Shown here in pieces: positions 1 through 50,339 of a DNA stretch of 52,522 nucleotides. The stretch is from Dicyema japonicum (taxonomy: Eukaryota; Animalia; Dicyemida), in NCBI GenBank assembly GCA_011109175.1, contig RDEW01000037.1, forward strand, positions 105,770-158,291. Reading direction: 5' to 3'. The notes under the pieces are model-generated. The model saw nothing but the letters and a program-made list of their open reading frames with translations. It ran no database searches and was not told the origin of the DNA. Each line of letters starts with the position of its first letter. The stretch's first letter is position 1. The translations under genes were made by a program, and so were the position numbers.

Positions 1-3000
1 TAATGAATTAGATAATCATGAAATTACACAATCTACAAAAGTTTTCTACATTAAATGTGTTTTGATATGGACAATAGCTTTATCCATATTATTATAATGA
101 GTTACATAATCATGATTATTACATAATCTACTATAGTTATTCTTGAGTAATTGTGACTTTATATGGACAATAATTTTATCCATATTAGTTAATGAATTAG
201 ATAATCATGATATTATACAATCTACGAAAATTATTCTAGAGTAATTGTGACACAATCGTCAATAGTGATTTTATAGTAATTATGACTTGATATTCACTAT
301 AGCTATTCCATATTATTGTAATGAATTAGATAATCATGATTATTACATAATCGACTATAGTTATTCAACAGTAATTATGACTTTTTATGGAATATAGCAC
401 TATCCATATTATTGTAATGAAATTAGATAATCATGATTATTACATAATCTACTATAGTTATTCTACAATAATTATGACTTGATGCATATATCGTTATCCA
501 TATAATTGTAAAGAATTAGATAATCATGATTATTAATAATCTACTATAGTTATTCTAGAGTAATTGGACTTTATATGGACTATATTTATCCATATTATTG
601 TAATGAATTAGATAATCATGATATTACACAATCTACTATAGTTATTCTACAATAATTATGACTTGATGCACATATCATTATCCATATAATTGTAATGAAT
701 TAGATAATCATGATTATTACATAATCTACTATAGTTATTCCTAGAGAAATTGTGACTTGATATGGAATATATTTATCCATATTAGTTAATGAATTAGATA
801 ATCATGATATTATACAATCTACGATAATTATTCTAGAGTAATTGTGACACAATCGACGATAGTTATTTTACAGTAATTATGACTTTATATTCAATATATG
901 TCTTTATCCACAATTATTGAAATGAATTAGATAATTATGATTATTACATAATCTACAAAAGTTTTCTACATTAAATGTGTCTTGATGTGCACAATAACTT
1001 TATCATATTATTATAATGAGTTACATAATCATGATTATTCATAATCTACTATAGGTTATTCTTCAGTAATAGTGACTTGATATGGACAATAGTTTTATCC
1101 ATATTAGTTAATGAATTAGATAATGATTGTTATTACATAATCTACTATAGTTATTCTTCAGTAATATTGACTTTATATGGACTTTATCCATATAATTGTA
1201 ATGAATTAGATAATCATGATTATTACATAATCTACTATATTTTTCTAGAATAATTATGACTTGATGCAATATAGCGTTATCCATATTATTGTAATGAATT
1301 AGATAATCATGATATTACACAATCTACGATAATTATTCTAAAGTAATTGTGACACAATCGACAATAGTTATTTTACAGTAATTATGACTTTATATTGAAT
1401 ATATGTCTTTAATCCATATTATTGTAATGAATTAGATAATTATGATTATTACATAATCTACAAAAGTTTTCTACAATAATTATGACTTGATGCACTATAT
1501 CTTTATCCATATTATTGTAATGAATTAGATAATCATGATTATTACATAATCTACTATAGTTTCTACATTAAATGTGACTTGATGCACTATAGCTTTATCC
1601 ATATTATTGTAATGAATTAGATAATCATAATCATTTTCACAATCTACAATAATTATTCTGGAGTAATTGTGACTTGATATGGACTTTATTCATATAATTG
1701 TAATGAATTAGATAATCATGATTATTACATAATCTACAATAGTTTTCTACAGTAATTGTGACTTTATATGGACTATATGCTTTATCCACATAATTGTAAT
1801 GAATTAGATAATCATGATTATTACATAATCTAAAATAGTTTTCTACATTAAATGTGTTTTGATGTGCACTCTAACTTTATCCATATTATTATAATGACTT
1901 ACATAATCATTATTATTAGATAATCTACTATAGTTTTCTACAATAATTATTCCTTGATGCACTATATCGTTATCCATATTGTAATAATTAGATAATCATG
2001 ATATTACACAATCTACAAAAGTTTTCTACATTAAATGTGTCTTGATATGGACAATAATTATCCATATTATTGTAATGACTTACATAATCATGATATTAGA
2101 TAATCTACTATAGTTATTCTTCAGTAATTGTGACTTGATATGGACCATATATTATCAATATTAGTTAATGAATTAGATAATCATGATTATTACATAATCT
2201 ACTATAGTTATCTTGAGTAATATTGACTTATATGGACTATAGCTTCATCCATATATTGTAATGAATTATATAATCATGATTATTACATAATCTACAAAAG
2301 TTTTCTACAATAATTATGACTTGATGCACTATAACGTTATCCATATAATTATAATGACTTAGATAATCATGATATTACACAATCTACTATAATTATTCTA
2401 CAGTAATTGTGACACAATCGACGATAGCTATTTTACAGTAATTATGACTTTATATTCAATATATGTCTTTATCCATATTATTGTAATGAATTAGATAATT
2501 ATGATTATTACATAATCTACTATAGTTTCTACAGTAAATGTGTCTTGATGCACTATATCGTTATCCACATTATTGTAATGAATTATATAATTATGATTAT
2601 TACATAATCTACTATAGTTTCTACATTAAATATGTCTTGATGCACTATATCGTTATCCATATTATTGTAATGACTTAATAATCATGATTATTACATAATC
2701 TACTATAGTTATTCTAGAGTAATATTGACTTTATATGGACTATATCCATATAATTGTAATGAATTAGATAATCATGATTATTACATAATCTACAATAGTT
2801 TTCTACAGTAATTGTGACTTGATATGGAATATATGCTTTATCCACATTATTGTAATGAATTAGATAATTAAATTACACATAATCTAGAATAGTTTTCTAC
2901 ATTAAATGTGACTTGATGTGCAATCTAACTCTATCCATATTATTATAATGAATTACATAATCATGATCATTACCTAATCTACAATAATTTTCTAGAGTAA

Positions 3001-3583
3001 TTGTGATTTGATGGACTATAGTATTATCCATATTATTGTAATGAATTAGATAATCATGATATTACACAATCAACGATAGTTTTTCTAAACTAATTGTGAC
3101 TTGATGTGCACTATAAATTATCCATATTATTGTAATGAATTAGATAATCATTATCATTACCCAATCTACGAACGTTATTCTACTGTAATTGTGACTTGAG
3201 ATGCACTATAATTTATCCATATTATTTAATGAATTAGATAATCATAATCATTACACAATCAACGATAGTTTTTCTAAACTAATTGTGATTTGATGTGCAC
3301 TATAACTCTATCCATATTATTGTAATGAATTAGATAATCATGATCATTACACAATCTAAGAAAGTTATGCATCACTAATTGAGACTTGATGTGCACTTTA
3401 TCCATATTATTGTAATGAATTAGATAATCATGATCATTACCCAATCTACGATAATTTTCTAGACTAATTGTGATTTGATGCAATATAGCTCTATCCATAT
3501 TATTGTAATGAATTAGATAATCATAATCATTACCTAATCTACAATAATTTTCTAGAGTAATTGTGATTTGATATGGACTATAT
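1..3583. repeat. AT-rich satellite array, ~93-95 bp monomer, ~36-38 copies, some ~130 bp long variants
   Basis: TAATGAATTAGATAATCATG recurs about every 94 bp (e.g. near 1, 95, 190, 320, 415, 508, 601). The array runs off the left edge and ends abruptly at ~3583. Confidence 0.97.
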
Positions 3584-4177
3584 AAAAGCAAGTTCTCCAG
3601 TTTGTCCAAAGTAGATAGGTCAAAGGAGAAATTTTTCTTGCAGGAGCCAGGAGGAGGAACATAAACATTCGCAATTTCAATTTTTCCAATGGAAGTTATA
3701 ACAGAGATTCCAATTATCTCCGTGTTCGATCTTCCATTAAGCTCTTGTGAAGAGAAGGGTTCTCGAGGTATTTTATTGCTTTTCTCACAAGAGTCAGTAG
3801 ACCCCTCCTTGGCCAGATGGGCGGTCGGATCTTACTGTGTTGTATCCGTTAAAGAGAGGAGTACGAATGTTATTTGAAAGTTTCGTTTCCTGGAGAAGGC
3901 AGATGTCCACTCTGTTCCTCTCCAAGAATAAGGAAAGTTCGGCAATTTTTCCTCTGATCCGTTTATGTTTAAGCTTTGATTGTTAACTTCTTTGGGCCTG
4001 GGTTTTGTTTTACGTCTACTGAGGTCAACAGTCTCAATCGATAGAATGTTCCAACAGTGAGAGAATGCCGTCCAGTGGGAAGTCCTCTGGTTGGTAGAGT
4101 GCAAATGGTTCTTTTTAGATATAGTTTAGGAATATATCCGACGCCACCAGAAACGGTGAACCACATGACGCACGCTA
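3584..4177 (-). mobile_element. 5' fragment of Ingi/Vingi-like LINE: pseudoknot, 2A-like peptide, AP endonuclease (decayed)
   Basis: Minus strand reads RLRLLTSVDVKQNPGP, then LNING, VDICLLQETKL, GLLTLVRK and IANVYVPP (APE motifs) across frameshifts. It is truncated at the satellite edge. Confidence 0.85.
4106..4171 (-). ncRNA. HDV-topology nested pseudoknot, copy 1
   Basis: P1 GCGTC/GGCGT, J1/2 ATG, P2 TGGTTC/GAACCA, P3 ACC/GGT, P4 GATAT/ATATC, A-rich linker CTAAAAA. Paired by eye. Confidence 0.6.
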
Positions 4178-4199
4178 AAATTAATAAAACAGCTATGCA

Positions 4200-4789: not shown

Positions 4790-7650
4790 TTTAAAAATTT
4801 ATTATTAAAAAACATGAGTAGTTAATTACTGAGTACAGCGGATATGATCAAGTGGCTGTCCTTGGAAAAGCCACTCGGTTTCTCTTTCTAAGGAAAGAGA
4901 CCGTCTTGGGGCCAAAGACTCCTCTCGTCTCGACGACCACTGGCTGTACATGGAAACGGTTTAGGAGGCTGCTGTATTTCTTTATTTTTGAGTTTTCATA
5001 TAAACGGGCGGCCTCTCCCGCTTTCATTGCCGACCTCAAAAGTTTCGACTGGGAAAAGCTGTCAGTACAGGCAGCATCCCAAATTAAGCATTTGCCCCGA
5101 GAGAAGGGGAATACAGTCGCTTCCCATTATCCTACTCATGCCCGTTGGCTCTAAATGGATGGGTATCCCGCCAACTCGAGGGCGCGCTTCACCACTTCAT
5201 TTATAGCCTTGTGTCTAGCGAATCGACCTGCGCTTTTTCAACAAAAAAGGGCATGATGTCCATAGCAGTCGACTTTCCGGCCGCATCGGCACTCAAGGGG
5301 TTGGCAAACTTTCAATCCAAGTCTGATGGAGACTCCGGTGCGGACGGTTTCATCGTCTAAGTGAGTTTCCACGTTTCCAGTGGGTAGGGCATTGATCCAA
5401 GCCCCGCTCCACTCGCATCTTGCAGTTAAAAGACAGGCTCGTCGGTGTTGGTTAGATATTTTCAAAAGCCTCTCGTATTTATCCTCGCAGACAGACTCAT
5501 AAAGGTCTCTCTGCCCGGGTTGTTTGACTTTAGGGTGTACCAAATCTTCGATCTTTGACGACTCTGATGGGAGCTGGAGAATCATCATGATCAAATTCTG
5601 ATTGGAGTCCAATGAGGATTGATTTGCCGGGTGTGCTAAATCATATGGTGAGAGAATTCCGAGTCCACCAAAGCGAACGGGCAAGGTTGCTTGTTCCCAT
5701 CCTTGTTCGTCGAATTCGACATTAGTAATACGTTCGGTCGTAGACCGGAATAGGGAATCAATCGCCCCGAGTTGTTGCATTTTCAGGTAACATGGAGCTC
5801 CTCGAAAGACGTAATTTAATTTCTGCGAGGATAAAGCGTTTTTCATGAGAAAAGAGAGGTATGTGCATCCAGCATCCCAAGGCGTAAAAAAGTTTTTTTT
5901 AGTTGCTGTTCTTTAGCCAACAGAGTGTCGTTAATTCCAGTTTCAGCCAAAGTGCATCCAAGTATTTCTAAATGATCCGGCTCGATTTCCGATATTTTAG
6001 GAATAATCTCCCGAAACATTAATAGGATCCGATTCCATTCATATCGGGAGAATCCATAATTAACAATTTCGCATTTGGATGCGTTTAGCTTTAAACCAAG
6101 CGTATCCAATTGGGTTAGTAATCTCTGTAGACAGTCATCTACATTGTTAGGATGACCTCCCAGGGTGTAATCATCCAAATACCACACGTTCAGCGGAGTA
6201 GTAAGGCATCTCATGACACGGTCGACACCGAGGCAGAACAATGCCGGTCCTAGTGGGTCTCCTTGCTGAACCACACGACGAGGGAATGAAGTATTTCCCA
6301 TGTACAAGACTGGACGGTTTTCCATACGAACAATGAACATAATTATATATAGACGGGTAATGGGTAAGACAATCTTCCAAAATTACATCGCGCCGTATGG
6401 TATTGAAGGCGTTTTTTATGTCAATCTTGAGGACCACACAAGGCATGTTCGTTCTGTTTCCAGTAAACATCCGAACGGCATGAACCGCCGCCTCACATCC
6501 ACCAGGAGTACCGACCCCTACTTGGGTTGGTCGCAGTTGTTTGACAAGCATCGGAAGGATTGCTCTGCTAGCAAGTTTAGAAGCCAGTCGACGAAAAACA
6601 AACCCAACAGCAATAGGACGAATTCCTCCTCCACATTTATCAAAGGCAATTAACTTGGCGGAAAACATAATATGACGGATTGCTTCTGGTAATCTTCCGG
6701 AAAGCATTCTGTTGATTAACCTCGTTATAGCCGATAATAGCCGAACACCAGAGTTCCCCGTATTCTGATCAATTAAGTCTTTTAGGTGTCCTGGACGGAG
6801 TCCGTCGAGTCCGCCACTGCTGCTGGGGCGAATGAGAGGATCGCATCTTTCACGTCCCCCTCAGAAATAATCAGACTAGGTAATTCTCCAGAGCAAGTAG
6901 GGATCTGCTCGTCCACTGGCGGACCAGGATGTCGTTCAACCAGTGCATCGTAGGAGTGTTCAGTTGGCTCAATTAGACGGTTATGCTCTTCTAGAGTCCT
7001 CACGGCGGCCCGGACTCCACCTTCAGATAGTTTGCGATGTATCGCTCTTCAATCAATCTTTGTGTTTCTGAGGCATGGTTCTCGTGGTTTGAGGGCTTGA
7101 AGGTATATTCTCGGGAGTCACTGAACAAATTTCCAGAAGAAAACAAGCAAATATTTTCTTTTACAATAGCGTGAGCGATTCCTGATCTTTCCTCTTCTGA
7201 CAGGGCATACATAGCGTGTATGGTGCAAAGTAGAATAATCGTGTCCAATCACTGGTTCAGTCGAAGAAATTGCCCTTTCAATACAATCGTGTAAACAGTC
7301 GGCGGCAGGAACACGGGGAGCTTTTGGAATTTTGATCATGATCCTTCGTGTAGATGCCAAGTTTGCAATTTATTCAAGGGTTTTCTGGTAATCTATTGGT
7401 ATTCGTTCAGGTGAATTAGGTGGAGTCGATGGTGCTTTCGTCCCAGGAAGTAGGCATGCCTGGCAACACCAGTTGGTAATGGTGGTAAGGGCTTTTTTGG
7501 TCATTCCAACACATGACATGTGAAAAACCGACGAACAAACGACACAACATATCAGCCGCTTTCTTTTGTTAATTTTATTGCAAAATTCACAAAGCTCTTC
7601 TCTTTTGTCGATCTTGTGCATATCGCTTCTGGTTACTTTTTCTCAATTAC
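4790..7650 (-). mobile_element. CRE/SLACS-clade non-LTR retrotransposon, near full length, frameshifted (PHD finger, RT, restriction-like endonuclease)
   Basis: N-terminal C4HC3 PHD finger (CEFC...CCVVCSSVFHMSC...WCCQAC), RT motifs GGGIRPIAVG, QQGDPLGPALF and WYLDD, C-terminal CRCG...HAL.C...RH..IN and PVVVETRG. Confidence 0.92.
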
Positions 7651-7869
7651 ACCACACACAAGTTTTCAGTAATTATATCTTTAATTATATTATCTAAACT
7701 CTCCAATTCATTATTCACCAATGAGAGAGTTTGAAAAACGACATTCATCAATTTTTATCCAACAATTAGTAATTGATTCAGAGTGTATTTGTAGTCATCG
7801 TACTTATCAAAAAAATTCCAAGGCAAGAAATATCACACGAATTTTTTTCACCACTTATTGTCTTAAATG

Positions 7870-8500
7870 ACAAATTGTGTCTTTCTTAAATTTTTCAAGC
7901 CAACCATTGAGGTATAGTTCAAATTCCTAGCTACTTTTATAGCTATGTTTTAAGAATAGGTCCTGAAACGGAAATACTTTAAAAAGGCATTCATAAACAA
8001 TTTTATCGAATTTCTGTGACAACTGTCTCTTCTCTGTGAAATTTGACTAAGACAATTTGATTGTACAAACCCATTATTTATTAAGTTCATATAATTTTGT
8101 TTAATTCTAGATACTGCCCCTAAACAATAGAATTATCAGATAACCTTTACTAATTTTATATTTTTTGACAATATCTCGTTCGCTCATGAAACAATTTCGT
8201 TGATTTCTTGAACAATTTTAAGCTTTAACTCCAGAGTAAGCTTCCTCCCCATGACAACAAAAACGCAAATCTAGCACGCTAAGTTTAAGAAAATTTTATA
8301 TAATTAAATTTAATATTAATTGCAAGACTTTATATAAATTAAAAAAAATTAAGTGCCCCACAAAGTGGTTCATGTAATTTCCAAATTTGGAAATTACTGT
8401 ATTAAAATGATCTAATTTTCAAACTGCCCCAAAACCTGGGGGTGCCCCAAAAATAGATGTGCCCCAATTAGGAGGTCCGCTCAAAATGGAGGTTGCACTG
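7870..8500 (-). mobile_element. pogo/Tigger-like transposon, 5' remnant
   Basis: Terminus TA-CAGTGCAACCTCC at 8500, similar to the other pogo ends. Minus-strand LTLELKLKIV (psq HTH) and SGPIL...NGWL (CENP-B HTH) remnants. Confidence 0.65.
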
Positions 8501-8539
8501 TACTTTGTTTTTGACAATAATTAAGGATATCTAAAATAA

Positions 8540-8800
8540 ATGCTTCAATTATTAATACTTCATATGAAGCTAGCAGACATGGTTTATCTATTGGTCTAAA
8601 TCCGATATTACTAAGTTTTTCAGATTTATCATATTTAGTTCTCTTTGCAATAAAACTTTCGACAGTGTCAACATTTTGTGGGTGAGTTTTTTCCTTATGT
8701 CTTTTTAATTGAGACGGCTTCAAAGAGTTGTTTCCCATTATAACGTCGCATATCATACACTGCTTTTTTACTGCGCTTTATCGACGTTGTCAGATCCAGT
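8540..8800 (-). mobile_element. hAT Buster/ZBED5-like transposase N-terminal fragment
   Basis: CMICDVIMGNNSLKPSQLKRHKEKTH...LLASYEV is typical of Buster/ZBED5-type transposases. Confidence 0.75.
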
Positions 8801-8854
8801 ATATTAAAAAAATCCATATTGGACATAGGAATCAATCCATTTGCGATTAACCAT

Positions 8855-10700
8855 TATTATTATTATTATTATTATAAGCAACTACATAGAATCATATAAA
8901 CTATAATTCTATCCTTAAGGTGTTTAGAAGGATGACAGGGCGCAGGTTTTCAACTGGCCCAGGTGGTTTATTACTTTTTTGAACTGGTACTAGTATCCCC
9001 TTTCCAATTTCTGAAAAGTCCTTGTTTTCTATCATGTCATTCAGCAATTTTGAGAGTTTATCTGCAAGTTCTGGAAGGCCAAATTTTAGCAATTCAGATG
9101 GTATATTATCTGGTCCTGGAGAGCGCCCAGATTTAAGTTTCCTTATCGCCATGCAAACCTCCTCCGGTGAAATGATCCGTTCAAGTGTTGTGTTCTTAGC
9201 CGTGAAATCTGATTTTTCTCCTTTTACAAAGAACAGTTGTTCAATATGCGATGCTATGAACTCTGTCTGTTCTGCAACATTTCCTATTGTTTTTCCATTT
9301 CTGTCATGCAAAATAAGTTTCACTGATTGGCTCTTCCTCCGTATTAGTCGTATAGCCATGAATGTCGCAGCATTGTCTTTAAGGTTTTCTACCTCTCTGA
9401 TCTTGCTTTCCAACTGACTAGTGTGATGTAGTCTGTTTAGGAGTTTGATTTTTCTCTCAATTTGCCTTCGTTCTTGTTTCAGTTTGCAAACAGTCTGAGG
9501 ATCGACAGTATTTTCGGATCTAAGCCTTAAGTTCTTCTGCAAATTCAATAGGGCTGACACTTCCGGGTGACGCTGACTGCTATGGGGTTTAAGTTCCCCC
9601 AATGTTTGTCAGCAGCGGAAATGATCCCTCTCATAGTTTCGAGCCATGCCTTTCCTGGTGAAAGATCCGATGCCGTATTATTAATTGAATCCGATACACA
9701 TTCTTTATAGTCTGCTTGTACTTTTGGTGAAGAGCCCAAGAGTTCAGTCATATACCTTCTTGATCGCGTGGAATCTCCACCACGATGTGTTTGGAAGAAG
9801 CATCTTCTATTAGTTATCCCGTAGAGGAACTCCTCCGCAGTTGGACCAAGTCTTAAGCTGAATCTTGCTGACACAATTTTGTGATCACTGTTAACAGTTA
9901 GTCCTCCATAAGATCTCGAGTCCCGTAAGAGAGATTTGTCTTTTACTCGACACAGAATATAATCGATCTGATTATAAATCCTTATCAGATTTCCGGTGGT
10001 CGATAGTCTAGTGCCCATCCACGTTGTCTTGTGGCGTGCGGAATGTTGGAATTGAGTATTGCACAGGAATAAATCAAAGGATTCGCAGAAATATGCCAGA
10101 GCAGTACCAGAATAGTTCCTGATCCCCCTTCCATGTGGTCCAATAAAACGTTCGTGTCCTTGATGTACCCCAGCTTTAGCATTCCAATCACCAGCGATAA
10201 AGAGGAACGATGAAAACTTCAGAGAAGATACGACCTCGACAAGTTCTTCGTAGAAAACGTCCAATTCCTCTGGGTTTTTGGAAACACGGCCACTATGTGG
10301 GGCGTACACGTTCACAATGGAAATTAGTTGCCTGGACTTCCCTTTGGGTCCAATAAGAAATTGAATAACACATATCCTGTCATCAATTTTCCAATATCGA
10401 TGTAATCTGGGGAGCAAATTCTTGTGAACAGCGAAACCCTGTCCATAGTGTTTACAGTACGATGGAAGGAGGATTAGTCTGTAGTCTCCAAGGTTTTCAT
10501 CGAGTCCTTTTCTGAGCTTCGTCTCTTGGAGACAGCAAACAGAGCATCCATATTTTGCAAGGTCCAGACATAGTTGGTGCCTCTTCGACCAGTCATTAAG
10601 GCCCCTGGCATTGAAGGTAAGGGTAGAAAACCAGAAAGGATTATTCAAATACGTATTAGACATATGTGCTATAGAGGGACGTCACCACCTCAACCAAAAA
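8855..10700 (-). mobile_element. RTE-clade LINE, internally deleted (APE and linker retained, most of RT missing, (TAA)n tail)
   Basis: ORF 9545-10663 has TFNARGL, CLQET, AGDWNA, QIDYI and SDH (APE). ORF 8901-9602 ends at NLRPVILLNT and is joined to a GTTGCTTA(TAA)n tail like the one at ~13980. Confidence 0.88.
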
Positions 10701-14029: not shown

Positions 14030-15060
14030 ATTGTAGCCGAGATTGGAAAACCGAAGAAGGACCAGTCAGTTATCATCAGATCAGCCTAATTTACTCTACT
14101 TTTAAAAATATGGAATAAATTTTTCCCAAGGTTTTCAAATATGCTGAAAGAAAACAGCTATTTCAAAAGATCAATTTGGCTTTCGTCCTAGTCGATCTTG
14201 CAGACATTTTTTTTTTTTTTTTTTTAAGCCTTTTCACGAGAGCCATAGTATTTTATAGCTCCGCATAGGCAGAACACACACTTTATTTAAGTAAAGAACA
14301 GTTAATTTTAACTAATCGTAGAACCAAGGAATGATCTTCACTTCTTTTTTTTCTTTTCTTGTGTGAGTGTCCTTTCTAGACAAATCCAGTTCCGCAGTGA
14401 GTATTCACTGATGACGGCGTCACTCGTCAAACCATTTCTGCATCGTAGATGCGTGGAACCTTCCACCAGGTGAACAGCAGCGAGATTCGAACCCGTAGCC
14501 TAAGCCACTTAAGCCCGACACCTAACCACTAAGCCACCCGGCTTGCAGACATTGCCTATTAAATTTCAGCTCCGAGCAAGCTGAGGCCATAGACTCCAAT
14601 GTTTTTGAATGTCATATGTTTGGACATATTAAAGGCTTTTAAAAGTGTAATCCGCAAGCCATAATTAGTCAACATCTCGGACATGAAGTCCTAAAGAACT
14701 GATGGTTTGGATAAAAATGTATCTAAAAGAAAGAACTCCTTTACTAGATAGATATTATTGAAGAAATGAGTTCTCTATTATTCAACGTATGATTTGCTGG
14801 CTTCCCGTCTTTGAGGTCACCAAGTACGAAATATCTGATATATGCAGATGACGTACTACTGTGATCAAGTATGACCTCGGAGAAGAAATTAAATATATAT
14901 AGAAGAGATGGGAAACTGGTGTGGTCTCTAGCTATCAAAGAAGAATTAAATGGTATCAAGTTTGCCAAATTTTCATGCAGCTCGTGGTGAGTGTGTTAAT
15001 GATGCACCTCATAACTAACTTAAAAATCGTGAGTAAATAAATCAAAGACCTCAAATATGT
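14030..15060 (+). mobile_element. Decayed I/Jockey-group LINE RT fragment split by a SINE
   Basis: Removing the SINE restores QFGFRPSRSCRHC...ICLDILKAF, followed by LIYADD. Same family as 22539-25190 and 50340-51600. Confidence 0.75.
14207..14541 (-). mobile_element. Full-length tRNA-derived SINE with poly(A) tail and target-site duplication
   Basis: Head has A box TGGCTTAGTGG and B box GGTTCGAATC. 19-nt poly(T) on the plus strand. TSD CTTGCAGACA(TT) at ~14197 and ~14542. Three further copies in the window. Confidence 0.93.
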
Positions 15061-16079: not shown

Positions 16080-16855
16080 TTCATTTATTTATTTATTTTT
16101 ATTTATTTTAATAACCCCGGGAACACCGAGAAAGAAAGACAAGAGTCAAACAGTTAGGTGATCCCAGTCCTTGCAATCAATTATGCCATTCGACGTCTGT
16201 GATCTTCCATCGTCCTCACTACTTTCCGGAAGAGCCTTCTCTCGGTCTTGCAGAGGAATCCGATCGGGGAGGGGAATTTCTTATCCAATCGGTTTTCTCT
16301 TGCCATGGGAAGGATCAGGCGAAGCGGATTTCCATCTTCCTCACAGACTCGAAGAAATCCGGAGCCACCGACTACGGATCTTAGCTTCCATGAGTAGTGG
16401 GTCGACTGTTGATCCATTACGTGGGCAAAGCATACTGATTGTTTTCTGGTGTATTGAGTTGACTCTTTGGACCATAGACTCCGATAGCGCGAATCTCCAT
16501 GCAACGGAGGCATACTCAACGGCAGGCGAAATTGTTTGTTGGTAGAGGGTAGAAACGGAAAAGTCCATGTTCCTCGTGGTCCTCCGGACAATGGCGCGTA
16601 AAACGTTAACTTTCTGGAGGCCCCTGGTAATCATGTCTGTTGCGTGGGAGTTGAAATTGAGAAGACTGTTGTACTTGACTCCAAGGACAGTGTGGGACCT
16701 TGTCACTGGAATCCGAGTGGGACCAATAAAGATACTCGGTTCATCCTTGGAACGACGGTCCGAAGTGAAAGTGGAACAGATGGACTTGGTTGCAGAAATC
16801 GTAATTCGATTGCCAACAATCCAATCGTGGAGAGTGTTCTATTTTGTCTGAGTTT
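16080..16855 (-). mobile_element. 3' portion of I/Ingi-group LINE (RT C-terminus and tail)
   Basis: TVLGVKYNSLLNF...STLYQQTISPAVEYASVAW, GGGATCAC motif and A-rich tail. Very similar to 49440-50020. Confidence 0.85.
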
Positions 16856-16885
16856 TAAGATTATTTTTGAAAATGTTGTTAGCGT

Positions 16886-16945
16886 GGTGTCATGTGGCTC
16901 ACCAGAAATGGTGTCACCCATTCCAAAATGAAACGAAAAGAGCCA
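16886..16945 (+). ncRNA. HDV-topology nested pseudoknot, copy 2
   Basis: P1 GGTGTC/GTCACC (one mismatch), J1/2 ATG, P2 TGGCTC/GAGCCA, P3 ACC/GGT, small P4, linker CGAAAA. Confidence 0.65.
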
Positions 16946-17016
16946 ACAGCTTCTCCCCACCGTCTGGTGGTCCTTTCATCTCCTGTGTCTTCGACCCTGT
17001 CTGGTGTCCCCATTTA

Positions 17017-17067
17017 TCCAGACTTTTGATTCTTCTATGTGGAGACGTCGAAACCAATCCTGGTCCA
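17017..17067 (+). other. StopGo/2A ribosome-skipping peptide SRLLILLCGDVETNPGP
   Basis: Exact D(V/I)ExNPGP consensus with upstream hydrophobic LLxxC/G segment, in frame with the APE domain. Confidence 0.9.
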
Positions 17068-19243
17068 TGGAGATGTTTTACAATTATACAATTGAATACG
17101 AATGGGATCAGGAAGAAAATCTTTGAACTCCGGGCACTCCTCCTCGAAAATGAGGCTGACCTCGCTTTAATACAGGAGTCCAAGCTATCTCCCTCCATAC
17201 CAACACCCTCTTTTCCCGGATACACAGTGATCCGTAAAGATCGTCAGGGAGGACGCGGAGGAGGACTACTTACTATTATAAAGAACGATATTCCTTTTAT
17301 GGATACAACTCAACGAACCTCAGAGCTTCTTGGCTCCGACAAGACTTTGGCGCAGATTACTGTCAAAATGGAGTTATTCCTGTCCTTTTGGATCCATTTG
17401 GCTAATTTATATATATTTCCTTTTGGATCCATTTGGCCTCCATAAGGATCGTGTCCGTCATCTTACACCCCTGATTTATCACGCATTTCAACATTGAAAA
17501 ATCTACTGTTATGTGGGGATCTTAATGCACGACATCCAGTTTGGCTCACTTCCCAATCTTCTGATAACCGAGGAGAACTCATTGCAAATTATCTTCCTGA
17601 CCTGATTATACTGAACAACCCTAACTCACATACGAGGACCCCATTAAGGATGACTGATAGCTGCACATCCCCCGACTTAACACTATGCTCACTTCTCTGG
17701 CTAGACTATTTCCTGGAACGTCTTTTACGGCTTCTCCAGTGACCACAATCCAATCCTCCTAAAACTGAGAGGTCTTCGACGATACAGGAGACGGCCGGCG
17801 GAATCAAAAAGATTCAAGGATTATACGAAGGTTGACTGGTCTGGTTTCAGTAACCTTGTGGATAAATTCTTGGCTCGGAGATTATCCTTCCCAATACGCT
17901 CCATTGATGAGGCCGCTGAAATTATCAGCGCTGCCATTCAGAAAGCTGACCATATTTTTATTCCTATATCGTCATACAAGAAGTTTATTCCTACCCTCAG
18001 CTCTTATACAATAAGTCTTATAAAACAAAGAGACCGGCTGAAGAGATGCCATCTGTTGGACATGAAGTCTTTGACAGCCCTCAGACAACTGAATAAAAGG
18101 ATCTGTCAGAGCATAAAAGAACACAAGGACAAGAGATGGCAGCATCTAGTTAACCACCTCGACAGGAAAAGTACATCCCGACATTTCTGGAAAACTCTTA
18201 AACAAGTCAAGTCGGAGCTGGATGATGCAGACGGAACCGGAAAGTCTTCTCCTGAACACTTATGCCACCTACATCCTAACACCCTTATGAAACATTACGC
18301 TGGAATTAGCTTCAAACCATTCTCGAAACACCTGGACATTAAGGTGCGTGCCCATAAACCGAAGAAGGAACCTTACCACGAACTATTCACAGATGACCAA
18401 GTCTTGGATGTGATCACCAGATTAAGAGGCCTGACAAAGTATCTTCTATTCACCTAAAACACCTAAGCCACTACGCAATTGGCTACCTCACGCATATATA
18501 GAACCTCTCCATTAACTATAATATTATTCCAAGATTTGGAAGAATTCTATCATCAGACCGATATTGAAGGCTGGGAAACCAGAGACAGAACCTGCTCCTA
18601 CAGGCCTATTTCCGTTACCAGCACACTGTCAAAAATTATGGAGAAACTTGTATTATCAGTCATTATTCCGTATCTTCTACGTCCTATATTTCAACATGGT
18701 TTCCTCCGCGGTAGGTCCACCGCTACATACTTGGCAACTATCGCAGTTCATTGCCGACGGTTTTAAACCCATCCCCAGCCTCACAAACGCACAATTTTGG
18801 TTTATATTGACATCAACAAAGCCTTTGACACTGTTTCGAGGAAAATCCTGGTTGGAAAAATATTTTCTACTAATATTAGTTCGAATTTGAAATTATGGCT
18901 GGCCAACTTTTGTCTGGAAGACGTGGAAGAGTAGTCAGTGGTGATCTCAGATCTAGATCACGATTACTACCGAATGGGTCACCCCAGGGGTCTCCATTTT
19001 CACCAATTCTATTCAACCTATTCCTACACGACCTACCTAATGATGAGACGAAGATTCCCTGCTATTATCCTACGCAGACGATGTAGTCATTGCAATACGG
19101 AACCGCTCGACGCAAGTTGCATCCATTAAAACTCAAACCAGTTTCATGTGTTAACTGATCGAAAAATAGTGTTAACTGATTGAAAAATAGTTGATTATTT
19201 ACTATTTCAATTATCGTTTTAAAAATAATGCATACCCCATAGG

Positions 19244-21735
19244 ATGGGGAAAGAAGAGAAATCACTTACGTCATTAGTAAAGGAGAATGTCCACACATTT
19301 TTCTCAAGGAACCTATTGGCAGACTCAGAAAAGCTCACCTACAAATTTCAAAACCATGAGAAGCCAACATCGACTATCTCGGACACTCAGAGATTAAGAA
19401 GCTCGATCCGTCGAAAACTTTCGGAAGGTGGTATCCGTGCTGCGGTGAGGATCCTTGCAGATCAACAATGTATAATTGAACCGTCTGAACAGTCCTACGC
19501 ATCACTTGTTGAGCGACACCCAAGTCTCCCCAACGACCACCGGGTTCCCCCTTGCCCAGGACAATTACCCAATCTACTTGTCTCTGAAAAGGACGTAAAA
19601 GATGGATCCTCTCTTTCGTCCCGAGTAGCAGTGGAGGACTAGATGGGCTCCGTCCGGGTCACATCAAAGATCTCATTGCTCATAACACGGGCAACTCTGG
19701 GGTCCGGCTCGTGTTGGCTATCACCAAACTAATGAACAGGATGCTATCAGGGACACTACCAGAAACAATTCGACACGTAATGTTCTCCGCAAAGTTAATC
19801 GCATTCGACAAGAAGGGAGGTGGAATACGCCCTATTGCAGTCGGAATGGTCTTCCGTCGGTTGGCATCAAAGCTTGTATGCAGAGCAATCCTACCTACGC
19901 TGATAACACAGCTGCAACCAACCCAAATAGGGGTCGGCACACCGGGGGGTTGTGAAGCGGCAGTTCATGCTGTCCGAACATTCACCGAAAAGAACGTGAA
20001 CATTCCTCACGTAATCGTCAAAATTGACATTAAAAATGCCTTCAACTCGATACGACGTGATACAATTCTGGAGGATTGCTTCACATACTACCCATCAGTG
20101 TACAGCTATATTCATAGTTCGTACGGAAAACCATCCAGTCTGGTACATGGCCAATATTACATTCCATCGTCTTCTGGAGTCCAACAAGGAGACCCACTGG
20201 GGCCCGCCTTGTTCAGCCTGGGAATTGCCCGTATCACAGGATACTGCTCCACTCCTCTGAGAGTATGGTATTTGGATGATTGCACCATGGGCGGCCATCC
20301 GAAGGATGTACTAGATTGTTTGAAAAGTCTGATAGTACAATTGGAATCCCTATGCCTAACTCTAAACACCAATAAGTGTGAAGTAACCAATTTTGGATTT
20401 CCACAGTCTGAATGGGATCTGATCCTTGGTATGTTCAGAGAGATCATTCCGAAAGCCACAGAAACCAAATCAGAACAACTGGAAATACTTGGATGCCCTC
20501 TTACTGATGCTGGAATCAGTAACACTCTAAGAACAAAAGAACATCAACTAAAAACAACATTCAGACGTCTGGAGATGCTGGACGCACACACCTCCCTATT
20601 CCTCTGAGAAACGCCTTATCAGCACAGAAACTGAACTACGTTCTTCGGGGGGCACCCTGCTACTTGAAAATGCAACAGCTCGATGCTATCGATTCCCTCT
20701 TCCGGAGTACTATTGAACGTATCACAAATGTGAAATTTGACGACCAAGGGTGGGACCAAGCGACCCTACCCGTTAGCCTGGGCGGACTGGGAATCCCTTC
20801 AACGAAAGATCTGGCTTGCCCTGCTTATCTATCCTCTTTGGGCTCCAGCCGACTGCTGGTCAGGATGATTCTCCAACTCCAAACAGAATCATCTGAAATC
20901 ACAGAGATGGAGCATTTGAAGGGGATGATGCCTGAGCAGAAAGATCGTTACAGGACCATCTGCGAGGATAAATATGAGAGGCTTCTGAACCAATCAAACC
21001 AACACAGACGTGCATGTCTAGTCACTGGAAGATGCGAATCGAGTGGCGCATGGATCAATGCACTCCCAGTTGGCAGTGTCGGGACCCATCTTGACGACGA
21101 TACTGTCCGCATCGGCATCTCCACCAGACTTGGACTGGAGATTTGCCGGACCCACAAATGCCGATGTGGCGCAACCGTCGATTGTTATGGACTCCATGCC
21201 CTCTCTTGTCGAAGGAGTGCAGGACGATTCCCAAGACACAAGGCGATCAACGGAATTGTCAAGCGAGCCCTGGAGTCTGCGGGATACCCAGCCATACTAG
21301 AACCTGTTGGTCTGGACAGAGGAGACGGAAAACGTCCCGACGGAATCACAATTTTTTCATTCGAAGAGGGGAAACCTTTGGTCTGGGACGCTACTTGTGT
21401 CGACACGCTTTGCCCGTCCAACATTGTCGGAAGCGCGGTAGACACACTGTATTCCGCGGAAAAAACGATGAGGGCAAAGGAGAAAATACGAAGCGCTACG
21501 CGACCGATTCGCGTTTTATCCGATAATGGTCAAGAAAACTGGAGGAATAAGTGGAAAATCGTTTCGCTTCCTAAAGAAACTTGGACGCTTAGCTACACTA
21601 AAAAGCCACGACGAACGTGAGACTCGGTGGCTACTCCAGTTGATCTCTGTTGCAATTGTGAGAGGCAACGCAACGTCGATAATGTCGACGGGGTCCACTT
21701 TGGATGATGGCAGTTTTAAATATGATTTACTGTAA
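19244..21735 (+). mobile_element. CRE/SLACS-clade non-LTR retrotransposon, 5' truncated, frameshifted
   Basis: GVQQGDPLGPALF, WYLDD, CRCG...HALSC...RHKAIN, KRPDG and WDATCVDT (RT plus REL). Paralogous to 4790-7650. Confidence 0.93.
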
Positions 21736-22386: not shown

Positions 22387-22459
22387 TACCCCGGATGGGA
22401 TTCGAACCCACGACCTTAAGATTATGAGACTTACGCGCTAACCACTGCGCCACCGAGGC
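22387..22459 (-). tRNA. tRNA-Met (CAT), elongator type
   Basis: 73-nt cloverleaf GCCTCGG...CTCATAA...TTCGAAT...CCGGGGTA with a U31-U39 pair. G1 rules out an initiator-type A1-U72 pair. A T6 Pol III terminator follows immediately. Confidence 0.95.
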
Positions 22460-32318: not shown

Positions 32319-32647
32319 TAATTAATTTAATTTAATAACCCCGGATACACTGAGAAACAAGTTAAAGTAAACAACTAATTAAATGTATCCAGTTTCCACT
32401 TCTACAGAAAAAGTCCATCCGGAATCAGCATAAAGGGTAAGACGTCCATAGTTGCAGTTGTGGAAACCCCTCCAGTGGAGTGGGGGAGAGCAAATGATCC
32501 TTTTTTGTGCCGGCCTGGCACTGGGCGCCACCTAGACAGGTAGATCACATGACGCCACTCTAATAGGAAGAGAGGAGGAACAGACGAACAAAACAGAAAC
32601 TTCAATCAATTAGCCACGAAGTACCACATGGCGCCACACGGCAGAAA
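32319..32647 (-). mobile_element. ~330-bp non-autonomous retroelement, copy 1
   Basis: 24-bp TSD CCTTTTGTTGTGGCAACAGATATT (32295-32318 and 32648-32671). Homologous end to end with 48544-48870. LINE-type A-rich tail. Confidence 0.92.
32495..32556 (-). ncRNA. HDV-topology nested pseudoknot, copy 3
   Basis: P1 GGCGTC/GGCGCC, J1/2 ATG, P2 TGATCT/GGATCA, P3 ACC/GGT, P4 (G)TGCC/GGCA(C), A-rich linker. Confidence 0.65.
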
Positions 32648-36934: not shown

Positions 36935-37160
36935 GGGTTTGACGAGTGACGCCGTCATCAGTGGATACTCACTGCGGAACTGGATTGTCTAGAAAGGACA
37001 CTCACACAAGAAAAAGAAAAAAGAAGTGAAGATCATTCCTTGGTTCTACGATTAGTTAAAATTAACTGTTCTTTACTTAAATAAAGTGTGTGTCCTGCCT
37101 ATGCGGAGCTATAAATACTATGGCTCTCGTGAAAAGGCTTAAAAAAAGAAAAAAAAAGAA
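36935..37160 (+). mobile_element. 5'-truncated SINE copy with A-rich tail
   Basis: Near-identical to the core and tail of 14207-14541. Confidence 0.92.
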
Positions 37161-43149: not shown

Positions 43150-44140
<991 letters not shown>

Positions 44141-44241: not shown

Positions 44242-44286
44242 GAATGTCACGTAACTCACCAAACTGGAGACATTTAAAAAGAGTTA
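44242..44286 (+). ncRNA. Nested pseudoknot, copy 4 (no P4)
   Basis: P1 GAATGTC/GACATTT, J1/2 ACG, P2 TAACTC/GAGTTA, P3 CC/GG, linker AAAAA. Confidence 0.55.
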
Positions 44287-44950
44287 CACTGCCCCTATCC
44301 TTCAAGGATGGACTGACAAGGACAACTGTCTTTGTTTGGGGACGTCGAATCGAACCTCGATCCCTAAAAATCATGCAAATAAATATAAACGGGATCAAAT
44401 GTAAGATTATTGAACTCAGAAACCTTATGGAAAATTATCGAATTAATGTCCTTCTATTACAAGAATCCAAACTCAGAAGTGCGAACACAACTCCAAAATT
44501 TCCTGGATACTCAGTTATCCGCAAAGATAGATGTAGAAAACTTGGGAAAGGCTTACTAACTATCATACGAAACGGAATCCCTTATAAAGATATCACCAAA
44601 TATGTCTACAACCGTCTCCATAACCTTGAAAGTATCGAAATTCTGGCCACAAAAATCCAACTCCCAAGGTTACGTATTATTCTGATCAATTCAAATCTAC
44701 CTCTTTCATCATCAGCCAATTGCCTAAAACTTTCGTCGATCAGCTCACTAAAGAACGTTCTTATTTGCGGTTACCTAAATACAAAACATACGCTCTGGCT
44801 GAGAGGTCAGACGTCAAACAAGCGGGAGATATCTTAATCGAAGACTTGAGAACCTTTTGCATCCTAAACGACCCTAACTTTCACAAAAGAACTCCCTCAA
44901 GACAAAACCGTCATCCCCTGACGTTTCAATCACGTCTCCCTTCTTCATTC
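44242..44950 (+). mobile_element. 5' fragment of Ingi/Vingi-like LINE: minimal pseudoknot, decayed 2A, APE
   Basis: QLSLFGDVESN (44338-44355, one nt out of frame) precedes IMQINING...LLQESKL...CGYLN. Confidence 0.82.
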
Positions 44951-48543: not shown

Positions 48544-48870
48544 TAATTAATTTATTTATTAACCCCGGATACACCGAGAAAGAATTTAAAGTAAACTACT
48601 AATTGAGTGTATCCAGTTTCCACTTCTACAGAAACAGAGTCCATCCGGAATCAGCATAAAAGGTAAGACGTCCACTACATGCAGTTGTGGAAACCCCTCC
48701 AGTGGAGTGGGGAGAGCAAATGATCCTTTTCGCGCCGGCCTGGAACTGGGCGTCACCTAGACAGGTGGATCACATGACGCCAATCTAATAGGAAGAGAAA
48801 AGAGGAACAGACAAGCAAGCAGAAAACTTCAACCAATTAACCACGCAGCACCACATGGCGCACGCGGATA
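48544..48870 (-). mobile_element. ~330-bp non-autonomous retroelement, copy 2
   Basis: 16-bp TSD TAGGCCAATCTCAAAT (48528-48543 and 48871-48886). Homologous to 32319-32647 over the full length. Confidence 0.92.
48721..48781 (-). ncRNA. HDV-topology nested pseudoknot, copy 5
   Basis: P1 GGCGTC/GACGCC, J1/2 ATG, P2 TGATCC/GGATCA, P3 ACC/GGT, imperfect P4, linker CGAAAA. Confidence 0.65.
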
Positions 48871-49439: not shown

Positions 49440-50020
49440 TCTTGGAGTCAAGTACGACAGTCTACTCAATTTCAACTCCCACGTAAAAGACATGATTACC
49501 AGGGGCCTCCAGAAAATTAACGTTTTACGCGCTCTTGTCCGGAGGACCCCGAGGAACATGGACTTTTCTGTTTCTACCCTCTACCAACAAACAATCGCGC
49601 CAGTCGTTGAGTATGCCTCCGTTGCATGGAGATTCGCGCTATCGGAGACTATGGTCCAAAGAGTCAACTCAATACACCAGAAACAATCAGTATGCTTTGC
49701 CCACGTAATGGATCAACAGTCGACCCACTACTCATGGAATCTAAGATCCGTAGTCGTGGCTCTCGATTTTTTTGCGTCTGTGAGGAAGATAAAAACCCGC
49801 TTCGTCTGATCCTTTCCATGGCAAGAGAAAACCGATTGGATAAGAAATTCCCCTCCCCGATCGGATTCCTCTGCAAGACCGAGAGAAGGCTCTTCCGGAA
49901 AGTAGTGGGGACAATGGAACATCACAGACGTCGAATGGCACAATTGATTGCGAGGACTGGGATCACCTAACTGTTTGACTCTTTTGTCTTTCTTTCTCGG
50001 TGTTCCCGGAATTATTAAAA
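49440..50020 (+). mobile_element. 3' portion of LINE, sister copy of 16080-16855
   Basis: High nucleotide similarity to the reverse complement of 16090-16700, with the same tail. Confidence 0.9.
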
Positions 50021-50339
50021 TAAAAATAGTCCGCTCGGATTCTTCAGTGTTGAGGAACCTTTTTCTCCTTTTATTACTTGGCAATCTATTCCGTGTAATA
50101 CCTAACTTTATACAAAGAATATTATTTTTATCCCATTTTGAGAGATAACTTTTCTTTACTCTGGGATCGATCCCATGTGGTCTCTAATTCTAATCTGATA
50201 CCAAATAAGTCAATTATTGTGACCGTTTCAGATTGAGATACGGCTGAATACGAACCGTTAAAAAATCGATATTCAATGTACCGATTTAAAAAGCCAATCA
50301 AACAAAATGGCAACCGTCCCAACAACAATCTAGTAACAA

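Follow-up and report, generated by a model that had tools for sequence, protein, structure and literature searches.

The 52,522-nucleotide stretch of Dicyema japonicum contig RDEW01000037.1 analysed here, called the window, holds five copies (c1 to c5) of a short sequence module that can be drawn as a nested pseudoknot with the helix order of the hepatitis delta virus (HDV) ribozymes. The module consists of a 6-nt P1 strand, a 3-nt joiner J1/2 (AUG, or ACG in one copy), a 6-nt P2 strand and a 3-bp P3 with a loop L3 of 3-6 nt; the P1' partner is followed by a variable hairpin P4 (none in c4), an A-rich linker (J4/2) and P2'. The strand order P1-J1/2-P2-P3-L3-P3'-P1'-(P4)-A-rich-P2' was found in all five copies. 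A tight descriptor, built from the copies themselves, placed them at 4106-4172 (-), 16886-16945 (+), 32495-32556 (-), 44243-44286 (+) and 48721-48781 (-), and located one further place in a sequence from outside the window. Both the positions and strands of five copies and their common HDV-type strand order had been put forward in the original prediction, and the descriptor scan confirmed them, with the limits given here for c1 and c4. The copies c1, c2 and c4 stand at the head of long interspersed nuclear elements (LINEs) that encode a 2A-type motif, and c3 and c5 lie in an element resembling a short interspersed nuclear element (SINE).

In c1 (4106-4172, minus strand) P1 has only 5 bp (GCGUC/GGCGU), J1/2 is AUG, P2 is UGGUUC/GAACCA and P3 is ACC/GGU; L3 reads GUUUCU, P4 GGAUAUA/UAUAUCU and the linker CUAAAAA. 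This copy is 90% identical to L002, a copy from outside the window at the site L005:9995-10061. The P1 of c2 (16886-16945, plus strand) is GGUGUC/GUCACC with one U-U mismatch, followed by J1/2 AUG, P2 UGGCUC/GAGCCA, P3 ACC/GGU, L3 AGAAAU, P4 CAUU/AAUG and the linker CGAAAA. For c3 (32495-32556, minus strand) the elements are P1 GGCGUC/GGCGCC, J1/2 AUG, P2 UGAUCU/GGAUCA, P3 ACC/GGU, extendable to ACCU/AGGU, L3 UGUCUA, P4 GUGCC/GGCAC and linker CAAAAAA; those of c5 (48721-48781, minus strand) are P1 GGCGUC/GACGCC, J1/2 AUG, P2 UGAUCC/GGAUCA, P3 ACC/GGU, L3 UGUCUA, a damaged P4 and the linker CGAAAA. The minimal form is c4 (44242-44286, plus strand), with a 7-bp P1 (GAAUGUC/GACAUUU) that includes the pair G44242.U44275, J1/2 ACG, P2 UAACUC/GAGUUA and P3 CCA/UGG around the loop AAC; it lacks P4, and its linker contains no C.

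P1 is accordingly shortest in c1, at 5 bp, and longest in c4, where its 7 bp include the G.U first pair that no other window copy has; c3 and c5 have 6 bp, as does c2 with one mismatch among them. Other P1 registers that would absorb the upstream leader reached 4 bp at best and were rejected. The predicted C ahead of the A-rich linker is present in four of the five copies (CUAAAAA, CGAAAA twice and CAAAAAA) and absent from c4; these linkers exceed that of HDV by 2-3 nt, and in some copies the C is able to pair at the base of P4. Between the subfamilies the loops GUUUCU, AGAAAU, UGUCUA (twice) and AAC share nothing among themselves or with the canonical HDV pattern; a variable L3 lacking the canonical consensus had also been proposed. 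The L3 of c3 and c5 can close to a 4-nt loop on a P3 of 4-5 bp. A P1.1 of two pairs can be drawn in c1 (CU with GG) and in c3 and c5 (UG with CA), a number of pairs expected by chance at such a length, and none in c2 and c4. A further hairpin, differing in sequence from copy to copy, lies about 5-25 nt past P2' in every copy (window 4060-4100 (-), 16950-16975 (+), 32455-32490 (-) and 44290-44315 (+), and L005 3040-3080 (-)); examples are CCACC/GGUGG in c2, AUCCU/AGGAU in c4 and the 10-bp CCAACCAACC/GGUUUGGUUGG in c7, the second copy from outside the window. The ribozyme of the trypanosomatid element L1Tc is attenuated by downstream sequence.

The reality of the fold was assessed with an alignment of seven sequences, the five window copies together with L002 and c7 (L005:3088-3158). 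The latter two come from one 509-kb contig, VCDQ01001009.1 (L005), of assembly GCA_006345805.1, labelled Octopus sinensis, which was reached via protein P0007, named by a source as an uncharacterised Octopus sinensis protein. The same contig carries the LINE families of the window (90% to c1) and an intact-looking second subfamily, to which c7 belongs. A search for additional copies via protein databases yielded one adapter-led 632-nt contig and P0007, nothing more, and a metagenome pattern scan gave no match. With a loose topology descriptor about 20 chance loci are found in the AT-rich window, and with the tight descriptor five loci were observed against about 1.15 per shuffled window. The topology alone is therefore not rare in this window, and the evidential weight rests on covariation.

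In the alignment, 94.2% of the cells are paired in the named structure; with the 3' partners shifted by 1-3 columns the value drops to 33-50%. Of the 15 pairs, 7 have changed on both sides. The covariation score was 0.448 compared with 0.228 +/- 0.034 for shuffles, and none of 500 shuffles reached 0.448. P2, claimed beforehand to change in sequence while keeping its pairing, pairs throughout (100%), and over five subfamilies compensation is seen in four of its six pairs. P1, said to be largely compensated, is 88% paired with three compensated pairs, despite a c7 partner strand misaligned by three columns; P3 is invariant. A test of cognate against non-cognate strands was set aside as weak, since tolerance of G.U lets many non-cognate strands pair. 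The covariance model called for in the original prediction was trained on six copies and recovered the unseen c7 at E = 6.6e-5, and found no further copy. The pseudoknot is real.

The decisive case is c7, whose layout follows that of the genomic HDV ribozyme almost throughout. Its P1 of 7 bp (GAUCGUC/GACGAUU) opens with a G.U pair, and J1/2 AUG, a 6-nt P2 strand, P3 CC/GG, L3 UUCUCGU, GG past P1', a P4 of 6-7 bp and the linker ACAAACA make up the rest. In the literature sequence of the genomic HDV ribozyme, the initial 40 nt are P1 (7), AUG, P2 (6), GCC, UCCUCGCU, GGC, P1' (7), GG. Aligned with c7, they match up nucleotide for nucleotide apart from a single 1-nt gap in L3, so that the C and G of the c7 loop fall on HDV positions 22 and 25. 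A strict canonical descriptor (7-bp P1, 6-bp P2, L3 = UNYNCGN, CAA in the linker) was run on 96 kb and gave four matches only, c7, L003:136-216, L008:351-414 and L010:26-93; none of the five window copies passed. All four matches share the coding strand with a 2A-LINE and precede the start of its open reading frame (ORF) by 0-80 nt, and further canonical features are P4 and, in L008, a possible two-pair P1.1. On 200 shuffles of all sequences the descriptor matched once in total, a figure that is generous because the descriptor was composed after the four examples had been seen. Given their position, strand and extra features, a chance origin of the four matches appears unlikely.

The LINEs with canonical cores stem from three different samples, marine or other, and their proteins are 36-45% identical to that of the LINE in the window. 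This clade of 2A-LINEs carries predicted HDV-like ribozymes at its 5' end. Because canonical cores occupy the same place in c7 and three related 2A-LINEs, the window fold is assigned an HDV-like ancestry, and with P2, P3 and J1/2 in common with c7, the window module is placed in the HDV-like lineage on sequence grounds. Comparison with Rfam, which had also been proposed, yielded no match of the HDV-type models to the window copies at the gathering score and at E <= 10, for the whole window and for stretches of 220-400 nt. At the same thresholds the canonical c7 and L008 were missed too, so that this null result has little power and the comparison proved uninformative.

Several candidates were dropped from the comparison. 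L006, with a c2-like CAUGUGG..GUCACC, turned out to be coding sequence of another LINE's endonuclease motif VGGDLNGHVG, and L004 and L007 showed no convincing fold. In L009, a 2A-LINE from a Tara sample, positions 39-135 (+) contain P1 GCCUUCC/GGAAGGC, P2 CUGCGG/UCGCAG, a GNRA-capped P4 and a CCAAAU linker; this by-eye fold was not counted, having a 34-nt hairpin where P3 and L3 belong, and is either a variant fold or a misreading. Upstream of c7, its own positions 12-27 occur once more as a 16-nt direct repeat, whose end falls precisely on the predicted cleavage site. The repeat could be a faint trace of template switching by a cDNA that had been extended to a cleaved 5' end, in a single case in which a random tandem duplication would end at this place about once in 10.

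In c1, c2 and c4, as in L002 and c7, a 2A-type motif follows about 150 nt downstream of the module, and then an apurinic/apyrimidinic (AP) endonuclease and a reverse transcriptase (RT). The 2A motifs read DVETNPGP, DVKQNPGP and DVEQNPGP, each with an Exo_endo_phos domain after it. By their predicted layout of leader, N-terminal 2A, AP endonuclease and RT, the host elements are single-ORF AP endonuclease (APE) LINEs, a class whose members with N-terminal 2A were described by Odon et al. (PMC3708506). The strict 2A motif occurs in 53 of the best 150 relatives of the N-terminal region. The sole telling name among the homologs is 'Tcoingi protein-like', a lead, from one homolog's name, towards the Ingi/Vingi type.

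In c1, L002 and c7 the AUG of J1/2 opens a stop-free frame into 2A. The frame of c1 (3994-4166, minus strand) runs from this AUG (4166) through a 50-aa leader into the 2A motif DVKQNPGP (3994-4016), and early stops beyond it mark c1 as a decayed copy by its reading frame. In c7 the ORF from the J1/2 AUG encodes 614 aa, and the leader peptide MWFTFS is common to c7 and c1/L002. The LINE body that follows c2 (16878-18766, plus strand) holds the leader, then 2A DVETNPGP at 17044-17066, an AP endonuclease reaching to about 17742 and, at 18479-18766, the beginning of the RT. Several breaks interrupt its frame, 2A is not in frame with the J1/2 AUG, and the copy is decayed throughout. The 2A of c4 (44341-44363, plus strand) is degenerate, reading DVESNLDP, and frame-shifted. 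A second LINE lacking the pseudoknot is present at 5155-10663 (-), with AP endonuclease at 9545-10663 and RT at 5155-7072, and at 19244-21620 (+); it has a CxC...HxxxC motif in its C-terminal region, and a 72%-identical RT fragment of it, with RT onset at about 19711, interrupts or adjoins the c2 element. The truncated LINE starting at c1 adjoins a tandem satellite (1-3583) that repeats about every 93 bp (offsets in self-BLAST: 94, 319, 415, 509 ...), its repeats being 75-83% identical.

The identity between c3 and c5 amounts to 89-93% and is confined to about 320 bp. The element with c3 (32319-32647, minus strand) measures 329 bp and is flanked by a 23-bp target-site duplication, ATATCTGTTGCCACAACAAAAGG; that with c5 (48544-48870, minus strand) measures about 327 bp and has a 15-bp target-site duplication, TTTGAGATTGGCCTA. 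Both start with a partial LINE 5' end (the first ~25 nt: leader, GGCGCC, AUG, UGGU), followed by ~70 nt of other sequence and the complete pseudoknot; a LINE-leader-like part (~120 nt) and a tail rich in AT come last. Contigs (not reads) of four runs from one sample were placed on the window at 80% likeness and their word depth was summed. Over the SINE element the summed depth was 2.2-2.7 million and beside it 23-31 thousand, with a reference of ~400 for perfectly matching single-copy contigs (run X1). The family is highly repeated, and the summed depth, a rough indicator of copy number only, points to thousands of copies. In the SINE copies J1/2 and P2 read AUG UGA, a stop, and P2 is still paired via three compensated pairs relative to the LINE copies; the encoded peptide can therefore not be what is conserved there.

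A tRNA origin of the SINE head was not supported by ARAGORN or Rfam, leaving only a by-eye resemblance to an A box. The window contains a tRNA-Met (CAT) at 22387-22459 (-), scored at 67.6 bits, whose 5' half GCCUCGGUGGCGCAGUGGUU resembles the SINE head and also the leader-P1-J1/2-P2 stretch of the LINEs (GCCGCGUGGCGCCAUGUGGU). In the SINE head a B-box-like GTTCG stands ~55 nt further on. Other short interspersed repeats with 93-98% identity and unrelated to the module are found at 16102-16685 and 49441-50024, and in the same identity range at 14209-14537, 36936-37157 and 43521-43798; by summed depth 46560-46887 and 48036-48199 are highly repeated as well.

The module had been predicted to stand at the 5' end of the LINE. 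It stands near this end but not at it, with 8-9 inherited nt ahead of P1 in the LINE copies and, as delimited by the target-site duplications, ~95 in the SINE-like copies. The leader before P1 of c1 (4173-4180, minus strand), TTTTAGCG, is common to c1 and L002, which are independent insertions with unrelated flanks further upstream; their homology begins at TTTTAGCG. Upstream of P1, c2 has TTAGCG, the SINE pseudoknot TTAGAG or TTAGAT, and the SINE head TTAGCC. In a tally of loose ends among hundreds of contigs of the SINE family, which gives the best-supported ends only, the well-supported end is the head (48861; 66-95 contigs per run), with the element-strand consensus TTAGCCGCGTG, and no end at P1 (48781) was among those given. 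The full-length 5' end thus coincides with the predicted cleavage site in none of c1, L002, c2 and the SINE copies. A ribozyme cutting at P1 would not pass the leader on, so its inheritance argues against efficient cleavage. The leader reads AGCGU in c1 and AGCGC in L002 (4173-4180 (-) and L005 9987-9994 (+)), and the same U/C difference recurs in P1' (GGCGUC and GGCGCC). In these two sequences the leader may have arisen as a degraded copy of the L3-P3'-P1' stretch, or may pair with it.

These observations lead to the question whether the window copies still cleave. In the ancestral canonical elements, the RNA would cut itself just 5' of P1 and so free the element from the upstream transcript, the compact fold would be left at the new 5' end, translation would begin in or beside it, and 2A would release the leader peptide encoded by the fold from the enzyme. 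Work cited in PMC4908430 implicates HDV-like ribozymes in the initiation of retrotransposon mRNA translation. In the window lineages compensatory substitution has kept the helices, with a non-canonical L3/P1.1 and the G.U at the cleavage site mostly gone; the TTAG leader would form the start of the RNA, possibly under an internal promoter like that of L1Tc Pr77 (PMC3383444). The scaffold would then be retained for presentation of the J1/2 AUG and translation, for protection of the 5' end, or for recognition by the LINE protein.

The window copies are probably ribozyme-derived scaffolds with weak or no cleavage, kept for another role; we infer both the loss of cleavage and the retained role. 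Besides the inherited leader, this reading is suggested by L3 loops of 3-6 nt without the conserved C and G, and by a G.U at the cleavage site in c4 only, the copy that has neither P4 nor linker C. R2 ribozymes whose active site carries a G-to-A or C-to-A change are inactive (PMC3774820). A cleaving ribozyme within a SINE would cut off the head of the element (Kojima, PMC5786205), a conflict that a loop-less scaffold removes. A more specific form of the same idea, which can be offered only tentatively, is that an HDV-like ribozyme turned into a non-cleaving module, in which P1, P2 and P3 were kept by compensation after loss of the catalytic loop through a second selectable function. This function could, for example, be a 5' pseudoknot that presents the J1/2 AUG cap-independently, with 2A discarding the fold-encoded peptide, or a handle in trans for the LINE protein.

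Several points speak against a loss of cleavage and are shared by the rival view that the intact master copies are all active HDV-like ribozymes with a relaxed L3, cutting 5' of P1 as in R2, RTE and L1Tc. HDV-like ribozymes tolerate much variation and have few invariant positions (PMC3774820, PMC3185411), so a non-canonical L3 is no proof of inactivity. The ribozyme of L1Tc, L1TcRz, functions with a P1.1 of a single pair (PMC3185411), and the two-pair P1.1 can be drawn for L002 as for c1, c3 and c5. A P1 of 6-7 bp and a short J1/2 of 3 nt are normal for the family (PMC4908430), the C ahead of an A-rich J4/2 is kept in four of five copies, c4 has its G.U at the base of P1, and the topology, the covariation and canonical sister copies in the same superfamily all fit an active enzyme. 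The window copies are moreover old, decayed insertions, in which the L3 of the master can be separated from decay only in the SINE, from two copies, and the contig-derived SINE consensus spans P3' to J4/2, leaving out L3. A minority of copies starting at P1 could hide behind a tally of best-supported ends, and the compensation may be older than the disappearance of the canonical loop. Under this rival the inherited leader would reflect incomplete cleavage or templates taken before cleavage. However, the L3s of the subfamilies are wholly different and lack the C..CG pattern of c7, L003, L008, L010 and HDV; three LINE copies have inherited the leader, and the whole head has been inherited by the abundant SINE, whose L3, once closed to 4 nt on a 4-5 bp P3, leaves nothing for P1.1. 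Uniform activity of the master copies is for these reasons considered rather unlikely.

It is less likely still that the module is an independent structural element, serving translation initiation or protein binding, that arrived at the HDV helix order by convergence, without any past as a ribozyme. The AUG inside J1/2 in frame with 2A, the structure kept in a non-coding SINE and the missing Rfam match would agree with such an origin, but c7 combines P2, P3, J1/2 and MWFTFS in common with c1/L002 with a canonical HDV-type core, the canonical core recurs at this position in related 2A-LINEs of other samples, and Rfam is blind to the canonical examples too. Conservation for a reason other than RNA structure, be it a DNA promoter such as a tRNA-like A box, a conserved peptide or chance complementarity, is very improbable. 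It could draw on the by-eye resemblance of UGGCGYCAUGUGGU to the 5' half of the window's tRNA-Met (UGGCGCAGUGGU), on the coding nature of the module in the LINEs and on the frequency of loose topology matches in AT-rich DNA. Yet neither a promoter nor a peptide needs seven compensated pairs and a fully paired P2, the SINE copies read AUG UGA, and neither ARAGORN nor the Rfam tRNA model recognised the region. The alternative left standing by the original prediction, an atypical HDV-like ribozyme or a new structural element, is supported, with canonical cores in c7 and three related 2A-LINEs and not in the window copies, for which an atypical, possibly non-cleaving derivative is the fitting description.

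Among the closest known systems are the L1Tc/ingi elements of trypanosomatids, with Pr77 and L1TcRz. Like the elements described here, they are APE LINEs with one ORF, and they carry an HDV-type fold within their first ~80 nt and a 2A just ahead of the endonuclease (PMC3185411, PMC3383444, PMC4035085, PMC3708506). The L1Tc 5' module is also present in short non-autonomous elements (NARTc, RIME, SIDER), as it is here in the module-bearing elements of 327-329 bp, and some SIDER2 carry two signatures, comparable to the full module plus partial second copy at the 5' end of the SINE. In L1Tc the cleavage site is element nucleotide +1, whereas here 8-95 inherited nt precede P1; unlike L1Tc, the start codon lies inside J1/2, so that the fold itself is translated, and the host has an animal-type genome instead of being a kinetoplastid.

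The genomic and antigenomic HDV, CPEB3, R2, RTE and LOA ribozymes have the same helix order, with a 6-7 bp P1, a short J1/2 and a 3-bp P3. The variable P4 and the C that opens a purine-rich J4/2 are found in canonical HDV-like ribozymes as here, and the J1/2 AUG is that of genomic HDV (PMC4908430, PMC3774820); c7, L003, L008 and L010 have in addition the HDV L3 pattern, and c7 the cleavage-site G.U. In contrast, the window copies differ from the canonical form in their short L3 without the conserved bases, in a J4/2 of 5-7 nt instead of 4, in a P1 that opens with G-C except in c4, and in matching no Rfam model. The SINE2-1_ACar/AMi elements with Vingi 5' parts (Kojima 2018, PMC5786205) resemble the 330-bp element in having a head, a LINE 5' module, a short 3' tail and target-site duplications, and the listing in that review gives no ribozyme for the Vingi clade. 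Compared with those SINEs, the embedded fold is here intact in its helices and altered in the catalytic loop, and the head resembles the LINE's own first 25 nt, not a recognisable tRNA.

Knowledge of HDV-like ribozymes at the 5' ends of LINEs dates back to 2009-2011, and L1Tc already combines a ribozyme with 2A, so that in neither respect is the basic idea new. New is a whole superfamily of apparently Ingi/Vingi-like 2A-LINEs with an HDV-like fold in an animal-type genome. New as well is the position of the start codon within J1/2, which makes the predicted ribozyme fold the first 20 codons and would give the 2A peptide a simple rationale. The third novelty is a natural series from canonical cores to loop-less yet covarying scaffolds, including an abundant SINE-like family. 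Such a series offers a direct way to ask what the HDV fold does for a retrotransposon besides cutting, and it bears on how a SINE may carry the 5' module of a LINE without beheading itself.

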